Shown in pieces: positions 1-31,600 of a DNA stretch of 32,151 nt. Numbering within the stretch: the stretch's first letter is position 1; every line of letters begins with the position of its first letter. The position numbers and the translations under genes were made by a program. The DNA comes from Klebsormidium nitens. Taxonomy: Eukaryota; Plantae; Klebsormidiophyceae. Location of the stretch: contig DF237745.1 of NCBI GenBank assembly GCA_000708835.1, forward strand, positions 1-32,151, read 5' to 3'. A model generated the notes under the pieces. It was given only the letters and a program-made list of their open reading frames with translations. It searched no databases and was not told the origin of the DNA.

Positions 1-49
1 GGGTTTGAGCGGTTAGACTTAACCATAGCCCAAACGTCACAGAAACGTT

Positions 50-2807
50 GTGTCTGGTCAAAGAGGGGGGCTAGGAGCGCATAAGTACTCCGAGATTCAC
101 ATCCAGAATGCTCAGATGATGTTCCTGTCAAGCGAAAGGCTTGTCAAGGCACTTGCAGACGGCAACGGGGACAAGCTCTGGCACCTGTTCAAAGACCAAG
201 CCGCAAGCCCCCAGTCTCAACAGGACCTGCTCACCTGTCGGGAATTGGGCGATCGCCTTACAGCGCTTTTCGTCAACATCATCATCCTGCACGTGCCCCG
301 ACCTCCCCAGCAACAGCCTTTGCAGAGGAATTACCTGAGGAGTTTTGAGCCGCTTAAGCCAAGGAGTAGAAAAGCGAAAGACCTAGAGAAGATAAGAGCA
401 AAGAAGACGCTTATAGTCATGAAAAGGCTGTTAGAAGCGGAGAGGCAAGGGCGGTCGCTTGGCACGAACCTAACTGTAACAACTCCAATCTCTTTGGCCC
501 TGTTTGATGCCGCGGGCGATATGCGTAAAGGGTCAAAAAGCGATTTTAACAGGTTTCTTGTCGAGAACGAATTTCCACAAACGCTCTCCAACCGCTACCC
601 CGCGACAACCTGCTGGATCCTAGAGGGCATGTTCATGATCAACTCAGTGCCGCTCGCAAACTGTGTCTACCTCAAGGACTATGTGTACCAGCTTGTGGGC
701 AGGTGGATTAAGTGGAGGCTCCAAGGTAAGGACTCACGACTGTACTCCTTCAGGTCATCTTGAAGGGTTTGTACTCTAAAAGTGTACCACACAGTACGGT
801 GTAAAACAGGGACAACCAAAACAATACCGACCAAAACGGACCGAATGAAGACTAATCTAGATCTATGATATCTCTGAAGGAAACGGTTAACCATTGTAAC
901 TTGCTAGAGCATCTTACGTCGACTGTACTTCTTTGAGGTGCTTCTATTGACTTGGTACAACCGAAGGGGCCCAGACGCTTGCTTTGCCTAGTTCGACCGG
1001 CCTAATCTGGTATTTGACCTGCGAAGAATGTAAAGCGGCAATCAAAAGCTCGAGAAAGCACCGAACAGACTAGCTTACTCATTACCTTCTCAGGTCCCCT
1101 GGTGAACCGGGTGGAGGTGGTCTTTGACGATCGACGGCACTCGACCGGGATGAAGAGCTTCCTGCAGGCCAAAAGGGCCGAGTCAGCGGGAGGCTCCGAC
1201 GACTCCACCACCAACCTCACTGCCGAGTCCCCCGTCCCCCATACCAACAAGGCGTGGGGCAGCTTCTTGCCAGCGCAAAACTGAAGCGCCAGCTGATCAA
1301 CATCGTAAGCGACATCCTGCCGGGGCTGGTCACACCTCTCCTTCGGGAAGGGCAGACTTGTCTGCTCGCTGGCGGTTTCGACGGCGGGCAGTTTGAGAAC
1401 AAGGCGTGCGTCATCACTCGTGTCAACGGCGAAGTTGCGGTAAGCGTGGGGGACGAGTACCTAAGCAATCACGCCGAGGCGGACACCCGAGTCTGGCTGC
1501 ATGCGCATAAGTGTCCGGAAGACACCATTGTCGTCTATTCCCCCGATTCGGACGTCCTAATGGTGGGCCTGCTCACCTTCGAGCGGTGGAGTGCGCAGCG
1601 CTTGGAGAGGCCGGGTAGCAGGCAGGTGTACGTCCTGTCCAGATCAGCCGGTCGCGAGGTGAAGAAGCGAACGAGCCGGGTATTGTCGACGTCAACCAGC
1701 TGGTCGGGGCCATCCAGGGTCATCCCCATCTCCAGTCCATCGAAGCTGCACAGCGAGTGAGAAGCCTGGTTAGTCTGTTTGTCCTCACCGGATGCGACTT
1801 TGTCTCCTTCTTTAGCGGCATTAGCAAGCGCACGTTCCTCAAAAACTTCTACCAGGAAGCGCATTTTGTGAGCGGGCTGGCAGGCTGCACTTTAGCAGAT
1901 TGGGAAGAGATGACAACTCGACCTCCGGGGGATGCACGATCTGGGGGGGAATTGGCTGGGGAGCCGGCGAAGGCGCACGGAGTTTCGGGTGCGGCGGCAG
2001 AAGAGTTAGGAGGTGCATATGGGGCGTTTTTGAGGATGGTGGGAGTTGCTTACTTCTTGAGATACAGAGCCAGGCTGGTCGAAGAAACGGCTCCTCGCTC
2101 GTTCTCAACCTTGACCGGGGGCGCCGACTCACGCGACGCTGCTGCAGTGGAGAGATGGCTAGAAGCAGTTCGGGACTGGACGTGGACGGCATCTGCAGGG
2201 GAGGAAGGGAATGTGCCGTCAGCTGGGGCCCTCTTGTTCCACTTCCTGAGGGGTGTGCTGGTCCTAAAAATCTGGGACTCGGCATGCACGGGCTGGATGA
2301 GCGTCCCCGCAGTAGGGGAATTTGGCTACAAGCGCGATGCGAGCACGGGGCAGCTGGGGGGCCTTGAATGCTGCCGCTGTGGGCGACCGAGAAACAGGGA
2401 CTGCGGTTGGGGGCGGAAATGGCTCACCGACGAGCTCTGGCGTGGAGAGTGGCGTCAATGCCGGAGTGGGGGGAGGGGACTGGACACCGTCCGGTCCTCC
2501 CCAAGGAAGCAGCGTATCGACCGACGGTCCTGGAGAGACGGAGAGGGGAACCCCAAGTGCTGGTCCCAGCGGGGGCGTCGTTGCAAGCCAAAGTTTCGAG
2601 GGGGGGGGGTGGGAGCCTGCAAGCGCACGGGGCATCTTTGGTGAAGCGCTCTCGGACAGTGAATCTGACGATGGTTGGTCGGACGACGATGACGACGACG
2701 ATGAGGAAGCGGACATTGAGGAGGATATGGGCCTTGGGGTGGGGGAGGCTTTCACGGACGAAGAGCCTGAGCTCGAGCAAGAGGGCCAAACTGGGGTGAC
2801 TGACTGA
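50..2807 (+). mobile_element. Frameshifted FEN1/XPG-family (PIN-fold) nuclease ORF, probable C-terminal part of an AcademX-like DNA transposon protein; 5' part probably lies outside the window
   Basis: Joining 116..725 to 1094..2807 across a phase-1 GT-AG intron, with frame corrections near 1269, 1637 and 2360, gives about 774 aa with no stops. 5'-nuclease acidic motifs appear in order: WILEG (611-628), VVFDD (~1117-1131), NHAEADT (~1467-1487), YSPDSDV (~1536-1556), H3TH LFVLTGCDF (~1775-1801). Then VPSAGALLFHFLRGVLVLKIWDSAC..GEFGY and an acidic tail (SDDDDDDDEE). The nuclease fold is well supported; the Academ assignment rests on recalled family architecture. Confidence 0.65.
726..1093 (+). 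other. Spliceosomal intron inside the XPG-like ORF
   Basis: Donor CAAG|GTAAGG at 726 and acceptor TTCTCAG|GT at 1093. Removal fuses frame +2 (..KWRLQ) to frame +1 (GPLVNRVEVVFDD) with matching phase 1. Confidence 0.8.
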
Positions 2808-2897: not shown

Positions 2898-3287
2898 GTC
2901 CCAAGTCCTTCACTGCTTGCATCCTTTCCTTTTATTTGCAATCTCCAAATAGCCATACCTACTTGGAACTGCAAAGACTGTTGCGAGAAGACCTGGAGGC
3001 TGGCTGATTGAGTTTACAGATGCTCTGCACATCAGCGCTGACTTACCTCACATCGTATCTGCAGTGCGCCAAGAGCGCTTCGCGCCCCTAGGCAGTGCCT
3101 CCCCCGTACACCATCCCCCTCTTTTCAGGTAGGCGCTCAAGTAGCACCCAGGCTGCGCTCGCTTGAGACCTTGCCAAGGCTGTGCGCGCTTCGAACCTGC
3201 CTAAGTGCCATTTCCCTTCGTCTCTGAGCGCCCCTGCTCCTTTGCAAAACATGCGCGCGCCCTGGGCCATGGCTCAAGGTCATACCC

Positions 3288-5105
3288 TCACTGGCCAACA
3301 CCCCTCGTGCACGTTGTGTGTCCCTGCCCCTGGCCCAAGCTGGGCCGCCTGACCCTTGCCTGAGCCTTGCATGTCCTCTTGAATGCACTGCTGGCGTGCT
3401 TATTGCTTGCCGCCCCCAACACTTGCAGGCGCGCTGAGCTCTGCTGCCCCCCATCCCCTCTGTCATAGTACAACCAGGTGCAAGGCGCCCCCACTTTCGA
3501 ACTTTCGAAGGCCCCGCGCTCGCGATCACCTCCCCTGTTTACCGCGGGGCCACTGCGCGCTGGGCGCTTGCCGCCCCTGCCAGCAACACTTGCTGCTGCC
3601 GTGGGCCCTGCCTGGTGCAAACTCCCCCCTGGCGGCGAAGGCCCCGGCGTGCTCAGCGCCTGCCGCCCCTGCTTTGTCACTTGCTGGCGCCGTGCGCCCT
3701 GCCTGGCCCCCAGTCGGGCCTGTGTACAGCATGCCTCCGCGCGCAGCCACACCTTTTCCAGGCTGTAGCGCACGCTGGGTGCTTGGCGGTCCTGGCGGTT
3801 GAACCGCTGGGGACGCCCACCTCCTGATTCTGCACAGGTTGACATTAAGGTAAGATATTCACTTTGTCTCATCAAAATGTTCAAAAGTCAATGCCTTCTT
3901 CATCCGGGGGTTGTACTATTGTCGCAACGCTTGTGATCAACGATCGCGCTTTTGCTCTTCTGCCCCTCAAATCTGTACGTCATAGCGGCAGCTGAACACT
4001 CGCATTTGCGAGCTAGCGGGCCATCATGCAGCAGCGGCTGAATGTCTGGGGCATTGCATCGAAACTCAGAGGGGCACCAAGGTGAGAAGTGATGGGTCAA
4101 GACCTTAAAACCATATGATTAGAAGCCTTCAAGGATACAGGGTCACTACACGAATCAATATTGCATCGCCAGTTGCGTGTGTGGCCCCTTCTCTGAAACT
4201 GGTGCGCAGATTATGGGTCAGATGCTCACCTCTTTTTTTATGCATGTTGCTGGCAGGGGGAGGTCTGGCTGCCGGTGCTTTGATGGCCAGTGTGACCAGC
4301 CCATCCACAGCGGCACGGTGCCTTGCTGCTAAATATCGAAGCAGCAGCAAGAACTCCACCTGCGCAGTGAGCAAGACAGTTTGTTTTTGCTTCTTAGCCC
4401 ATGATTAGAGCTTGAGCTTGATGAGCATTGTGTCTGGCTTTGTTGAATTACAATCGTAATCCACATTCACTTCTCCTGCCCGGCCAGACTTTTGCCCGCC
4501 AAATTTTATAGAAATGCTAGAAGTGGGTCTTTTCAACATGAGTTTGTGTTGCGAATCCTCATATGGATTCTCAGAACTATCACAGTAAAACAAGTTGCGG
4601 TCAATGTGGATGTTGAGCTGAATGCTGCCACTGCGATTGCTGCAATTTCATAAGCTTTGTCCAGGCCTTGGACAATGCAGAACAGGATGCAGGACTTCAA
4701 GCAACATGTTCTGACAGAGGTTATACCTTCGTTCTTAAGACAAGGTGATTTTACTGGATTCAAATGTAAGGCATCAGGCGCGTTGGTACAACTGCAAAAA
4801 TGAAAATGCACTTTCTGCTCTGCAGGTAGCTTATTGTCTGGCTTATAGCAAACCACTGCAATTGACCTGAACCAGGCACTAGAAGACACTAGGCTTCCGA
4901 GCAACCCGTAGATTTTGTACAGGATGTTGCCAGTCCATTGAATGCTCACCGTAGGTTGTCCCCCCCGAGTGCCACCTTCGGATGCCCACAATGAGTGCAG
5001 GCATGCATCCCTGCATAGTGTCTTGCATTTCCAGTTGCACCGAAAGCAATCGGACGATGCCACAATGATATGTGCGCCCCCAATACTCAAATGGTCTATG
5101 AGGCA
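3288..5105 (-). pseudogene. Degenerate multi-exon minus-strand gene relic of unknown family
   Basis: Exon-like blocks with this genome's splice signals: 5105-4950 (TTCTCAG|..|GTGAGC; PHRPFEYWGRTYHCG..RWHSGG), 4359-4230 (GCGCAG|..|GTGAGC; VEFLLLLRYLAARHRAAVDGLV..) and an acceptor at 3830 (TGTGCAG). The middle exons do not phase cleanly, and an internal repeat indicates a frameshift. Confidence 0.3.
3564..3706. repeat. Imperfect ~52-bp direct repeat, 2 copies
   Basis: 3564-3615 and 3656-3706 align at about 42/52 positions (shared TGCCGCCCCTGC, CACTTGCTG, GCCCTGCCTGG). Confidence 0.8.
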
Positions 5106-5562: not shown

Positions 5563-8500
5563 ATGGCTGCCTCGTCGATCGCCTCTCCTGTCGCCCAGCT
5601 TGTCCCTGTCGCTGCTTATCGCAAAGCCTCCGCCTCAGCTGCATCAAGAGACTCTCACTGGTTGTGCCCAACATTGTCGCTGCCACAATGCCTCGGCGCA
5701 TTGGGCGGGCAGTCCGCCTTCCTGTCCGGTCCGATCCTTTCCAGGAAGGGGGAGTCCCAGCGGCAGTGCTTCTCCCGAGGCTTGCAGGTGCGGTGCGCAA
5801 AGGCTGCCACATCCGGCAATGTGGCTGAAGATATCAAGCAGCACACGCGCCTGCATGACCTGTACAACCAGCAGGGGCAGAGCCCATGGCTGGACAATCT
5901 CACCAGGTACAGAAATTCCCCCAGCTCTTGGCCAGGTTCTTTGTCACTGGGCTAGATCTCTATGAAAGCACAGCAGCATTCTAGTTCATGCAGTGTTTTG
6001 TGGGGGCTCATGTGCCGGTGTTGGACCAAGTCCCACCATTCTTTTCCTATCTTTGTCCTGCTCCCCTTATCGGTTCGCGAAGTGCCAAGACAATTGCCAG
6101 CGGCTTGCATGTAAAGGAGAATTAGGTTGTCAATGTTCTTCTACCCCCAGATCATCTGCTCAATTGACCATGCGGAGTGAGCTGGCACTGTGATGATATT
6201 TGACGTAAACATTGTGGTCAGCTTGAAGCATATGCGGCTGCCGCACAGGCCCAGAATTGTATACCTGCGATCAAGCGTTGGGCATGCTCGGCTGCAGGGA
6301 CGACCTCCAGGACGGCAAGCTGCAGGAGTGGGTGGACAAGGGCATCAGGTGGGGGCACACCCAGCCACAAGCCCGCACACCCTCTATGTAGCACCAACTC
6401 ACTACGACCCCGCTTGTATTGCTTGCACAGGCCTGTTTACATCTGCTTTGCAGAACTTCACAGCATTGCGGTATTTGGACTCCCTTATGTGTGAAAAAGT
6501 CCTGGCTGCACTGGGCTTCCTCCATGTGATCCTTCCTCTGGCGACGCCCCTATCCGACATGCGGGCGGTGTGTGATGTGTGCAGGGGTGTGACGGACAAC
6601 CCGAGCATCTTTGAGAAAGCAGTGATGCACTCGGATCGCTACGATGGTCAGTACCGGGAGCTCATTGCAGCGGGAAAGACTGTGGAGCAGAGCTACTGGG
6701 AGCTGCAGATCACAGACATCAACGACGCGCTTGAGGTGAGCGCCCACGTAATGGACCAACGCTGTGCACAAGGTGTTCGGAAGTCGGGCGCCATAAGTCA
6801 GCCTCTGCGCTTCGTGTAAGAGTGCAGTCAAAACCACAATAGCAGGCTTCGGTTTCCATTGACCCCTTGAAGGGGGCCTATGTGTCGAATGACATCTTTC
6901 AGAGCGCTCTTGTGACTTACACATGGGGCGTCACATAGTCGCGTTTGCACTCAGGTGCTGTGGCCTGTGTATGCGGCCAGCCATGGGGAGGACGGCTACA
7001 TCAGCATCGAGGTGTCCCCTGAGGTGGCCCTTGACACGCAGCGTACCATTGACTCCGCACGCTACCTGCACGGCAGGTCAGCTCACCGCTTGTTGTTTAG
7101 AAGACGAAAATGCCAGGCTTGAGTGTCTAAGAAGTATAAAACACATGTTTCAGGATGATCTTGGGTCTTTGTTTCCTGCAAACTGACGTTGACTGTACTT
7201 AACCTGGTGGGTTTCGCCCCCCTTCGACGGGATTGTGACCTTTAAAAAATCACAGGTGTTCGGTGGTGCTTAGTTGTTCTGCTGACGGCTCCTGACATTC
7301 TGCTGGGCGCAGGATCAACAAGCCGAACCTGATGATCAAGATCCCGGCCACCAAGGAGGGCGTCCCCGCCATCCAGCGCATGATCGCGGAAGGCCGGAAC
7401 GTGAACGTTACAGTAGGTTCCGATCAAACGCTGATGCTCCACTCCTTTGATCTGCCAGTTCCTTGCGTCCCCTGCGTGAGCTGGCTTATAGGCACCATTT
7501 GATGTGGCCCAATGAACCGGCTAAACCGCCTCATACACGATTTGCAACCTCACAGATTATGCATCCTGGAGGAAGGCTGCAATCAGGAACGGCGGGACGC
7601 GAGTCCTCCCTTATACTTCCGAGCACTTCCTCAATCGGAGTCTCTTGTCCATGTCTCCGGCCTTTCCTCTCCTCTCATCGCGCTGACGCCTGCCTGGCGT
7701 GCTTGCAGCTCATCTTTTCGCTGACGCGGTACGAGGCGGTGATTGACGCGTACCTGGCGGGCCTGGAGGAGGCTGCTGAGCAGCTATCAGCCGAGAAAGT
7801 AGCGGCCATCTCCAGCGTTGCGTCCTTCTTCGTCAGGTGCAACATTCTCCCCTCCCCTAGCAGAAACTTTTTGGCGGGACACGCAAGGTCGTCTGATTGC
7901 CCCCCACTGGGGCAACCGTTTGAAGACTGTATCCACGTGTTTCAAGGCCCAGGACTGGAGGGCTGCAACTTTTTACGTTTGTCAGTGGTCCTTTTTGAGG
8001 ACGGCGCTTGGTAAGAAGGGCATGGCTTCTGTGTGCCCCAGCCAATGTAAACGTTGCTTGGTCGAGGGTTGCAAAATCTGCAGTAAAACGAGCACGTTCC
8101 TTAACTTTCATGTCTATCATTCTTTTCATCATCTGCTCGTGGTCGTGTGTCGCTGAAAGCACCATTTCCCCGAGTTGATTGGAGTTGCGCCTTTAGAACT
8201 GTCCTGCTTGGAGGCCCGCTGATGCTGACGTGGCGGTGTTGTGTGCAGCCGCGTGGACACGGAGGTGGATAAGCGGCTGGACGCGATCGGCACGCCCGAG
8301 GCGCAGGCGCTCAAGGGGAAGGCCGCCGTCGCGCAGGCCAAGCTCGCGTACGAACTTGCGCAAAAGTGAGCGGGCTCTTCGGCACCACTTGCGCCTCCTT
8401 CACTTCGACACAGTCTCGCAGCATCCGCCGCGGGGTTTTGCGGCAAAGGAAGGTGATATCGTGCGGCGATCCGACAAGCTCCTCTAGCTTAAGTCATGGC

Positions 8501-28688: not shown

Positions 28689-31600
28689 ATGCTCCGGGTG
28701 CGGCTTCCCCTTGCGTGGTCGCAGGGCGTGCCCCGCGGCGCTGCCTGGTCCGCTGTTTGGGAGCGCTGGGATGCTGCGCTGGGGGCGGGCCCTGCTCTTG
28801 CGGCGGAGGGGGCCGGTGTTGCGCCCGGCATGCTGGGGGCAGCGCCGGCGGCGGGGCAGCGCTGGGCGGCGCGCCTCATGTCCACCTTTGTGCGCAGGTG
28901 AGGCGCCAGCTGCGTGGTGGGATGAGGGCAGCGGGGGGCTCCGGGGTGCCGGTTTCGGGTTTAGATTGCTTAGGTGTCAGAGAAGCACGGACATCCGAGC
29001 AGAATGACTTGTATCTGCAGTCGACCAGCCATCAGCGTTTCCTTGATCGTCCTGCCAGCTTCTGGTCGCTGGGGCTCAGGGCTCGGAGCCTGGCTGCCTG
29101 CTATATCGTGCAGTGTGCCAGCACTGGTTGTCAGCGCAGTGGCTGGAAGCAGGCAGAGCGGTGCTGACTGCGTGCCCTGTGTGTGCGGTGCAGCAAGCCC
29201 CACCTGAACATCGGGACCATCGGGCATGTGGACCACGGCAAGACCACGCTCACGGCCGCCATCACCAAGGTCAGCGCCCGCATGCGCGCCATGATTGCTC
29301 GGGACGCTTGCTCCCTCTATGCTTCATGCTTCTCTGAGCAATGCTGGCAGGCAGGCCTGGTGCAGTGGGCCTGAGCCTGAGTGTGCTGGGTGCAGGTGTT
29401 GTCGGAGCAAGGGCAGGCTAAGGCGGTGGCGTTCAACGAGATTGACAAGGCCCCTGAGGAGAAGGCGCGCGGTATCACCATTGCCACGGTGAGACTCGCG
29501 CATCATGGCAACATGGCGTGCCTCTTCTCTCTTGTCCACTGCTTGCATGCTGCAGTGCGATGGAGTGGTGGTAGCGCTGCACGCTGGCTGGCAACTGCAC
29601 GTCCTGACTGGTTATACTGCTGGGGTGGCTGCAGGCCCACGTGGAGTATGAGACGGACAAGCGGCACTACGCCCACGTGGACTGCCCTGGTCATGCCGAC
29701 TACGTCAAGGTCAGCCCACCGACGGCCCACTTGTACGCAGGGAGACGCTTTATGTAATTTCGTGAAAGTACCGGTAATATTTCTGGGGTGCGCAGTGTGC
29801 CCCGATCCAGTCGAGACCCAGTCACCAAGCAGTCAGCATACCTGGCAGACATTGGTGGTTTACATATGGCCCGCATGTCCTCGAATGCAGACATCCAAAG
29901 ATCCAAAGGCAGGGGCCCAGCTAATGCAAAGATTCCCCTGCTTAGCATATCGACTGTGTTTCGTTGGCTTGCAAGGTTCTTGCAAGTGGAAATAGGTCAC
30001 AGTGGGCTTCATGACTACTCGCACATTTTTCGTAGGGCCTTGCAGCTTGTGGGCCTATGTTTGCCCCCCCACCCTTTCTGCCGGATCTGTCAACCAGTCA
30101 GGGTATGTCAACTTGGTTCTACAATTCCTGATTTGTGCTCCATCAGGTACTTCAGCCGTTTGCTCAGGTCTCTTTCGTCTGGGCTGCCCTGCTTGGCTGA
30201 CTGCTGCCGGTGGGTTGGCTTGTGTGTGCAGAACATGATTACGGGCGCAGCGCAGATGGATGGGGGCATCCTGGTGGTGTCGGCCCCCGATGGGCCCATG
30301 CCCCAGACGCGCGAACATATCCTGCTCGCTCGCCAGGTACGCGTTGTGCGCGCGTTTGCAACCGCCATGCGCTTTCTTTGACTGCAGCCCTCCTGAGTCA
30401 GTTGCGCTGCCTGTTGGAGACTCCCCGCGACTTGTTCGTTGCAATCGAGAGAGGGCGCTCTGACGGCGGCACGGTTGTGGGCGGGGTGCAGGTGGGCGTG
30501 CCGTCGCTGGTGTGCTTCCTGAACAAGGTGGATGCCGTGGACGACGAGGAGCTGCTGGAGCTCGTCGAGATGGAGCTGCGAGGTGGGCGGCGCAGGACAA
30601 GGCCCGAGGCTGCGGTCCTGCCGCAGTTCTTCGTTCCGGGAAATCTCACCTTATTCTGGCATGCAGTGGACAAACATGCTGGGTGCGGCTGTAGGCCAGC
30701 CATGGTTGCGACTAGGATTGGAGAAGTGTGATTTGGACGGGGCCAGGCTTCTGGGAGGGGGACGCGGCCTGCCTACTGACTGTGTGCCTGCTGCTGGTGC
30801 AGAGCTGCTGACGTTCTACAAGTTCCCGGGTGACGACATCCCGATTGTGCGCGGCAGTGCGCTGGCGGCGCTGGAGGGGCGCGACCCCGAGATTGGGCGC
30901 GACGCAATCTTGAAGCTGATGGCGGCGGTGGACGCGTACATCCCGGAGCCGGTGCGTCAGTTGGACAAGCCGTTTAGCATGCCCATCGAGGACGTCTTCT
31001 CCATCCAGGGCCGCGGCACCGTCGTCACGGGGCGGGTGGAGCAGGGCGTGGTGCGCACGGGCGAGGACGTGGAGATCGTGGGGATCAAGGAGAAGCCGCT
31101 GCGCACGACGATCACGGGCGTGGAGATGTTCAAGAAGACGCTGGACCAGGGCCAGGCGGGCGACAACGTGGGGCTGCTCATGCGCGGCCTCAAGCGCGAG
31201 GACGTGCAGCGCGGGCAGGTCGTGTGCAAGCCGGGCAGCGTGAAGACCGCGCGCCGCTTCGAGGCCGAGATCTACATCCTCACCAAGGAGGAGGGCGGCC
31301 GCCACACCGCCTTCTTCAAAAACTACCGCCCCCAGGTCAGCGCCCGCACATGTGCACCGCACCGGCAGGACCAGCCTCTCAACGGCCGGTGCCGCAGCCG
31401 GAGCAATCCACGCTGCACCATCCGCAGTCCTTAGCGTACGGCCTGCTCCTCGCTTGTTGGAGCAGTGCGTGCTGCACCTCATGCTGACACAGCTGGAGGG
31501 CCGCCGGATGCTCCTTGAATACTCTTTGAATGCCCTTGACCCGTGCAGTTCTATCTGCGCACCGCTGACATCACGGGGTCCATCACGCTGCCGGAGGGGG

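Follow-up and report, generated by a model that had tools for sequence, protein, structure and literature searches.

What is the interrupted coding sequence with which a scaffold of the streptophyte green alga Klebsormidium nitens begins, and does it belong to the host or to a mobile element? The DNA examined here, referred to as the window, is that complete 32,151-bp scaffold (DF237745.1), and both of its termini are assembly ends. Window positions 1–2807 very probably represent the 3′ part of a pseudogenised cut-and-paste transposon of the AcademX type (RepeatMasker “Academ-1”), cut by the scaffold end just downstream of the DDE transposase domain. AcademX is the nuclease-encoding lineage of Academ and is associated with 3–4-bp target-site duplications (TSDs) (PMC10045372). 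This kind of transposon is already known, and the streptophyte algal host widens its recognised range. The original prediction, made from the sequence of the locus, had proposed such an element in a streptophyte alga, and both the architecture of the protein family and the order of its Academ-1 motifs, compared by eye, now support it.

The window was searched piece by piece and not as a joined protein. Stop-free pieces on the + strand lie at 29–760 (frame 2), 1018–1281 (frame 1), 1128–1757 (frame 3), 1619–2641 (frame 2) and 2316–2804 (frame 3), and the homologous nuclease region runs through them from 41 to 2365 (+) in four frame pieces, none of which contains an in-frame stop. A word search with the 1128–1757 piece returned seven unnamed proteins (Logan, JGI) at 51–66% identity and three at 31–34%, while a search with the 29–760 piece gave seven more relatives at 53–70% identity. 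A hidden Markov model (HMM) of the family, from which the window rows were excluded, matched the four pieces collinearly at model positions 6–40, 43–95, 91–211 and 205–406, with E-values from 4e-5 to 6.5e-56.

The first of these pieces, at 41–725 (+, frame 2), encodes a linker that is helical and follows the transposase domain in relatives, the block TPISLALFD..GDMRKGSKSD, and the first active-site strand, WILEGMFMIN. It is 53–70% identical to relatives P0155–P0161 and collinear with P0023 (residues 1054–1258) and P0025 (residues 823–1045), with E-values down to 8e-17. A GT-AG spliceosomal intron of 368 nt follows at 726–1093 (+), with the donor caag|gtaagg and the acceptor ttctcag|gt, and it lies in phase 1; the split codon encodes Gly. 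Across the splice, the window has the same number of residues as intronless animal relatives in five of the six usable comparisons. The algal-type relatives diverge from the window at both intron boundaries, as would be expected if those sequences had been read through an intron placed identically. The second exon opens at 1094–1260 (+, frame 1) with the second active-site strand, VEVVFDD, and a basic stretch leading to K-A-W-G, and this piece is 55–66% identical to P0003, P0005 and P0006 (HMM positions 43–95, E 5e-8).

Two frame breaks then interrupt the second exon. Break 1 (∼1257–1262, +) is the loss of a single base from the run tgggg/cag, which takes the window from K-A-W-G in frame 1 to L-L-A-S-A-K in frame 3, where the relatives read W-G-K-L-L-A-S-A-K without interruption. 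The frame 3 piece at 1263–1628 (+) carries the arch helices (LASAKLKRQLINIV), GGFD, HAEADTRVWLH and YSPDSDVLMVGLL, is 51–66% identical to P0001–P0007 (HMM positions 91–211, E 6e-37), and has E, D, D and D at positions where these residues are nearly invariant in the family. At break 2 (1629–1639, +), five extra bases (gtc|ctgtc|cag) stand between the V-Y-V and Q-I-S codons, so that R-Q-V-Y-V in frame 3 is followed by Q-I-S-R-S in frame 2, whereas the relatives read V-Y-V-Q-I-S without a gap. This second site lies in a conserved, predicted beta strand and in a non-homopolymer context. The last homologous piece, at 1640–2365 (+, frame 2), comprises QISRSRGEEAN, the LTGCDFVSFFSGISK motif with the last active-site Asp and the helix-two-turn-helix region, and a helical cap domain extending to G-Y-K-R-D..G-Q-L, and it is 59% identical to P0052, 55% to P0007 and 43% to P0013 (HMM positions 205–406, E 6.5e-56). 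At the scaffold edge (1–40, +), an upstream continuation of the gene in frame 1 is possible, where FERLDLT stands against KEQIDLG of the relatives, with ∼13 extra bases before frame 2. A further frame break may lie at 25–40, a tentative suggestion based on seven matching residues. The original prediction had assembled this region from four fragments by means of one GT-AG intron and three single-nucleotide corrections. The four collinear pieces, the intron and break 1 have held, while break 2 is an insertion of five bases and the third correction, from frame 2 to frame 3 at ∼2320–2420, finds no homology support.

The domain encoded by these pieces retains the full set of acidic positions of the 5′ nucleases. 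All seven are present in the window copy, in LEG, VFDD, EAD, SPDSD and GCDF, as had been anticipated from the ordered flap-nuclease motifs. In the columns of the family alignment, six of the seven are the dominant family residue, and for the Asp of VFD only the sequence of the window copy was read. At the first acidic position the window copy, like roughly half of the family, has Glu, a point of difference from the Rad2/XPG nucleases. The two blocks that had been singled out upstream, TPISLALFD..GDMRKGSKSD and W.SFL...LK..LI, are likewise conserved motifs of the transposase-linked family, in the forms TPISLALFD..KGSKSD and W..FL..K..LI. Aligned by structure, KGSKSDF falls on the N-terminal helix of the FEN fold, and TPISLALFD directly precedes it.

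An AlphaFold model of the 600-residue relative P0044, built from an alignment of 96 rows, reached a predicted local distance difference test score (pLDDT) of 90.5 and a predicted template modelling score (pTM) of 0.90. Foldseek placed XRN2 and XRN1 at the top of the matches to this model, followed by EXO1 and FEN1. With VIA-align, EXO1 gave a Z-score of 15.4 (root-mean-square deviation 3.6, 267 aligned residues, EXO1 chain 2–311 against model 60–489), FEN1 ∼14, Rad2/XPG ∼13.3, GEN1 12.7 and XRN1/2 ∼12.5, and the model from GSKKKW onward aligns with EXO1 from residue 2 onward. By sequence, the only Pfam match to the window pieces was XRN_N, which covers EAD..SPDSD at E 0.28, and a PDB sequence search with the 1128–1757 piece was empty. 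The family profile searched against the PDB gave a weak EXO1 match (E ∼0.09), exactly at VFD..K..ER.RR and GCDY..GIG. The family nuclease thus has a predicted fold in common with the Rad2/XPG family (EXO1, FEN1, XPG/Rad2 and GEN1) and with XRN1/XRN2, and its seven acidic metal-binding positions are arranged as in those enzymes. It differs from Rad2/XPG in lacking a significant sequence match, in being embedded in a transposase fusion, and in having motifs of its own ahead of and within the fold. It shares the fold of these cellular 5′ nucleases and stands outside their family in the narrow sense.

The full-length relatives show what the window copy would once have belonged to. When 1.84 billion representatives were searched with a profile of the first matches, 2506 proteins scored at E ≤ 1e-3, of which 852 reached E ≤ 1e-10. 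They form a very large, patchy family of eukaryotic proteins, with named members from Mytilus coruscus, Antedon mediterranea and Ptychodera flava. Many members are 800–2250 residues long, with the nuclease domain near the C-terminus, and the Pfam domain DUF6589 lies upstream of the nuclease in 10 of the 15 long relatives scanned. A model of the 975-residue relative P0031 (pLDDT 83, pTM 0.81) divides into two recognisable parts. Residues 1–493 match the P-element transposase (Z 10.7, 283 residues aligned), Hermes (9.8), retroviral integrase cores (8.2–8.7) and the Tn5 transposase (8.2), and residues 660–975 match FEN/XRN nucleases. Because the N-terminal part of this model resembles transposases and the C-terminal part FEN/XRN nucleases, the family is, on its predicted structures, one in which a DDE transposase is joined to both a FEN-fold nuclease and a CXC finger. 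DUF6589, which occurs in P0025, P0031 and P0094 and is listed with unknown function, is probably the Academ transposase domain, with a confidently predicted RNase H-like fold that is closest to those of the P-element and Hermes enzymes. The upstream transposase that the original prediction had expected of such an element thereby has a predicted counterpart among the relatives. A DUF6589 match within the short relative P0009 was set aside as evidence of domain order, as P0009 resembles a chimeric call.

The C-terminal Cys cluster of the family has its counterpart in the CXC domain of Tesmin, TSO1 and LIN54 (Pfam TCR, PF03638). The CXC pattern occurs in 35 of 154 relatives, P0094 has a TCR/CXC match above the Pfam threshold, and the CXC region of the family matches LIN54 in the PDB (E 3e-4). 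Compared with LIN54-type CXC domains, the family has a single unit that ends a transposon protein, and the window copy has none. In the 723-residue relative P0068, two CXC clusters stand in tandem.

The connection to Academ comes from the motifs and the domain order. AcademX (RepeatMasker DNA/Academ-1; Kapitonov and Jurka 2010 and Kojima 2020, cited in PMC10045372) resembles the family in its single long protein, which joins a DDE transposase to an XPG/FEN-type nuclease and also has a Cys-rich finger and an acidic tail. Bivalves contain many Academ elements, which average 5565 bp in length (PMC10294476), and the 1417-residue Mytilus relative P0021 is compatible with a bivalve Academ element of ∼5.6 kb. 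We compared by eye two curated bivalve DNA/Academ-1 consensus entries, A.marissinica_82 and A.marissinica_83 (PMC10294476, supplement 12), with the family. Their transposase motifs are A-D-N, G-D-K-S, G-x-F-H-x-L-M-N and D-L-x-I-E-Q..M..L-K, and the consensus of the long relatives, DN; GDxKT; GDWHxLKN; DExHExxINxxxK, mirrors them. Next in both entries come V-V-F-D-G, H-E-E-A-D-T..L-H, x-D-T-D, S-G-C-D-S..G-V-G-K, a CXC cluster and an acidic end, so that motif order and content agree throughout between the bivalve Academ-1 consensus and the family. The termini of the two entries are TAGT...ACTA. Six P-D-T-D codon strings compared with the bivalve transposable element library gave one match, which is not significant in itself.

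The relatives of the window copy are, like AcademX, abundant in marine animals. The window copy differs from AcademX as described in that its host is a streptophyte green alga, that the algal copies have a spliceosomal intron inside the nuclease domain, and that the copy is frame-broken, has no Cys finger, and leaves its transposase, terminal inverted repeats (TIRs) and TSD off the scaffold. AcademX hosts reportedly comprise animals, a red alga and fungi, as Kojima is said to have noted. In the literature searched we found no report of Academ in green algae, and the literature on Academ with XPG likewise gave nothing useful.

Homology ends at about nt 2365, or at 2419 in one comparison, and what follows appears to be a decayed 3′ tail (2366–2807, +). 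Past this limit, relatives such as P0013, which is 43% identical over the preceding 240 residues, have a short strand, the CXC Cys cluster and an acidic tail. In the window copy no CXC finger is recognisable in any frame of the tail; the family HMM found none in any window frame, and Smith-Waterman comparison of the P0013 CXC region with each frame of 2340–2700 scored no better than shuffles, of which 149 to 430 of 500 reached the observed score. The frame 2 sequence LECCRCGRPRNRDC (∼2370–2420) was considered as a remnant of the finger and rejected, its score being no better than shuffles. An acidic run in frame 3 at ∼2650–2790, ahead of a stop at 2805–2807, resembles the acidic tails of relatives in composition only, and stop-free frames as long as this tail occur here on both strands. 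The absence of a clear Cys finger, also predicted originally, has thus been borne out over 2340–2700, while the Gly-rich ending proposed with it finds no homology support as coding sequence at 2366–2807. Since P0013, from a Logan assembly, retains the CXC finger at 43% identity, we read the missing finger as decay of the window copy and not as a demonstrated trait of its lineage. Among the repeats of the window, none marking a 3′ terminus was found.

Upstream, the scaffold starts ∼60 codons past the last transposase motif, a position judged from the algal-type relative P0161. In that relative the motif, A-L-D-E-A-H-E-Q-M-I-N..K, lies ∼60 residues upstream of where the homology to the window begins, and therefore the missing part of the transposase is expected just off the scaffold. 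A second, diverged locus of the family exists in K. nitens on a 3,201-bp scaffold. Its product, GAQ93560.1 (relative P0129), is annotated as a partial hypothetical protein and is 36–44% identical to the window pieces. The copy count that had been asked for thus yields a second locus in the genome and a single copy on the scaffold itself. At least 13 further fragments, 50–70% identical, come from JGI and Logan contigs.

Several observations weigh against assigning 1–2807 to AcademX. Because the scaffold begins inside the gene, no transposase, TIR or TSD of the window copy is visible. Only one Academ-type copy is present on the 32,151-bp scaffold, two scans of metagenome contigs found no relative, and neither Pfam XPG_N nor XPG_I matches the nuclease domain. 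The first frame break, in a run of G, could be an assembly error. Finally, the link to Academ is supported by architecture and by motif order compared by eye, and not by a scored alignment to Repbase Academ proteins. This last point, together with the annotation of DUF6589 only as a domain of unknown function, would leave room for a mobile element of another or undescribed superfamily that shares just the nuclease and CXC module with Academ. Such an element is nonetheless quite improbable, as the Academ-1 consensus and the long relatives agree in the transposase motifs (ADN; GDK; G.FH.L.N; D..IEQ..M..LK) as well as in the nuclease and CXC motifs, and DUF6589 is reported to be enriched in rust fungi, where Academ is most abundant among fungi.

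A working host gene, either a domesticated Academ-derived nuclease or a cellular FEN-like one whose frame breaks are assembly errors, would account for the intact set of seven active-site residues, the four homologous pieces free of in-frame stops, the intron position common to algal-type relatives, the placement of break 1 in a G run, and a locus with ordinary host genes beside it, among them EF-Tu and a transaldolase exon. It is unlikely in view of break 2, which is a five-base insertion inside a conserved strand and no homopolymer slip, of the loss of a CXC finger that a close relative retains, and of the protein searches, which returned no protein model from the locus. The scaffold also ends within the gene; assemblies often break at repeats, and a repeat is presumed here. 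That the sequence descends instead from a paralogue of a cellular repair nuclease (GEN1, EXO1 or XPG), or from an inserted giant-virus FEN1, is hardly credible, even though the fold matches EXO1, FEN1, XPG and GEN1. Sequence similarity to these proteins is not significant: the family profile meets EXO1 near E 0.09, and the window piece matches nothing. Close and distant relatives all fall in the transposase-linked family, and a scan of viral contigs, of limited sensitivity, found no relative. Best relatives among cellular GEN1, EXO1 or Asteroid, or viral FEN1, had been named beforehand as the outcome that would speak against a transposon, and they are not what the searches returned.

With the AcademX transposon as the preferred reading, judging from its sequence this copy cannot work, because no fewer than two indels break its frame, its CXC finger is lost, and the scaffold does not include its transposase part. 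All seven active-site acidic residues and the lineage-conserved intron are kept, and its decay would therefore be limited or fairly recent. The locus itself is an ordinary dead, truncated transposon fragment from which no function is expected.

How intact elements of this kind might move can be sketched from the predicted domains. Intact relatives make a single long protein in which a helical linker connects the predicted RNase H-like DDE transposase (DUF6589) with a divergent metal-dependent 5′ nuclease of the FEN1/EXO1/XPG fold, followed by a Tesmin/LIN54-like CXC zinc cluster and an acidic tail. The DDE domain may nick the 3′ ends and carry out strand transfer, the FEN-like domain may cut the 5′ strand at the structured ends of the transposon, in the manner of TnsA acting with TnsB in Tn7, and the CXC cluster would bind DNA. 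Short target duplications of 3–4 bp would accompany transposition in the nuclease-bearing lineage. Tn7 offers a possible analogy in that TnsA and TnsB, like the Academ family, represent a cut-and-paste system in which a DDE enzyme is paired with a second, unrelated nuclease. The two systems differ in that TnsA has a restriction-enzyme fold and is a separate subunit, whereas the second nuclease of the Academ family has a predicted FEN fold and is fused to the transposase.

Few cut-and-paste superfamilies are as poorly characterised as Academ, and to our knowledge none of its members has been the subject of biochemical work. The intron-bearing K. nitens copies extend its host range to streptophyte algae and offer a plant-side entry for dating the transposase-nuclease fusion. 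The family-level results may outweigh the locus in use, as DUF6589 becomes readable as a DDE transposase with a predicted P-element/Hermes-like fold, the “XPG” domain as a complete nuclease of the predicted EXO1/FEN1 fold, and the “Cys8” finger as a putative LIN54-type CXC DNA-binding unit. These assignments of DUF6589, nuclease and CXC make a two-nuclease model of transposition testable. More tentatively, and with the combination somewhat less likely to hold in full than to fail in some part, Klebsormidium may have its own intron-bearing AcademX lineage, the first Academ documented in Viridiplantae, with DUF6589 as the Academ transposase of P-element/hAT-like fold and the FEN-like domain as the second-strand nuclease of a two-nuclease mechanism. 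If true, a Klebsormidium lineage of this kind would mean either that the transposase-FEN-nuclease-CXC fusion is very ancient among eukaryotes or that it passed between streptophyte algae and marine animals.

The remainder of the scaffold contains pieces of host genes. An open reading frame piece at 6190–6816 (+) matches transaldolase/fructose-6-phosphate aldolase (PF00923, E 6e-9) and is probably one exon of a host gene. The exon at 30532–31431 (+) belongs to an EF-Tu gene of organellar type (GTP_EFTU_D2 and D3). It is 98% identical to K. nitens EF-Tu (P0163), and its nearest named relatives are land plant proteins annotated as mitochondrial EF-Tu. Scans of the window with Rfam and for tRNAs were empty. 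Just 3′ of the element remnant, the interval 3001–4000 is strongly negative in both GC skew (−0.18) and AT skew (−0.21). On both strands it contains long stop-free frames that overlap, and a direct repeat of 33 nt occupies 3548–3580 and 3640–3672.

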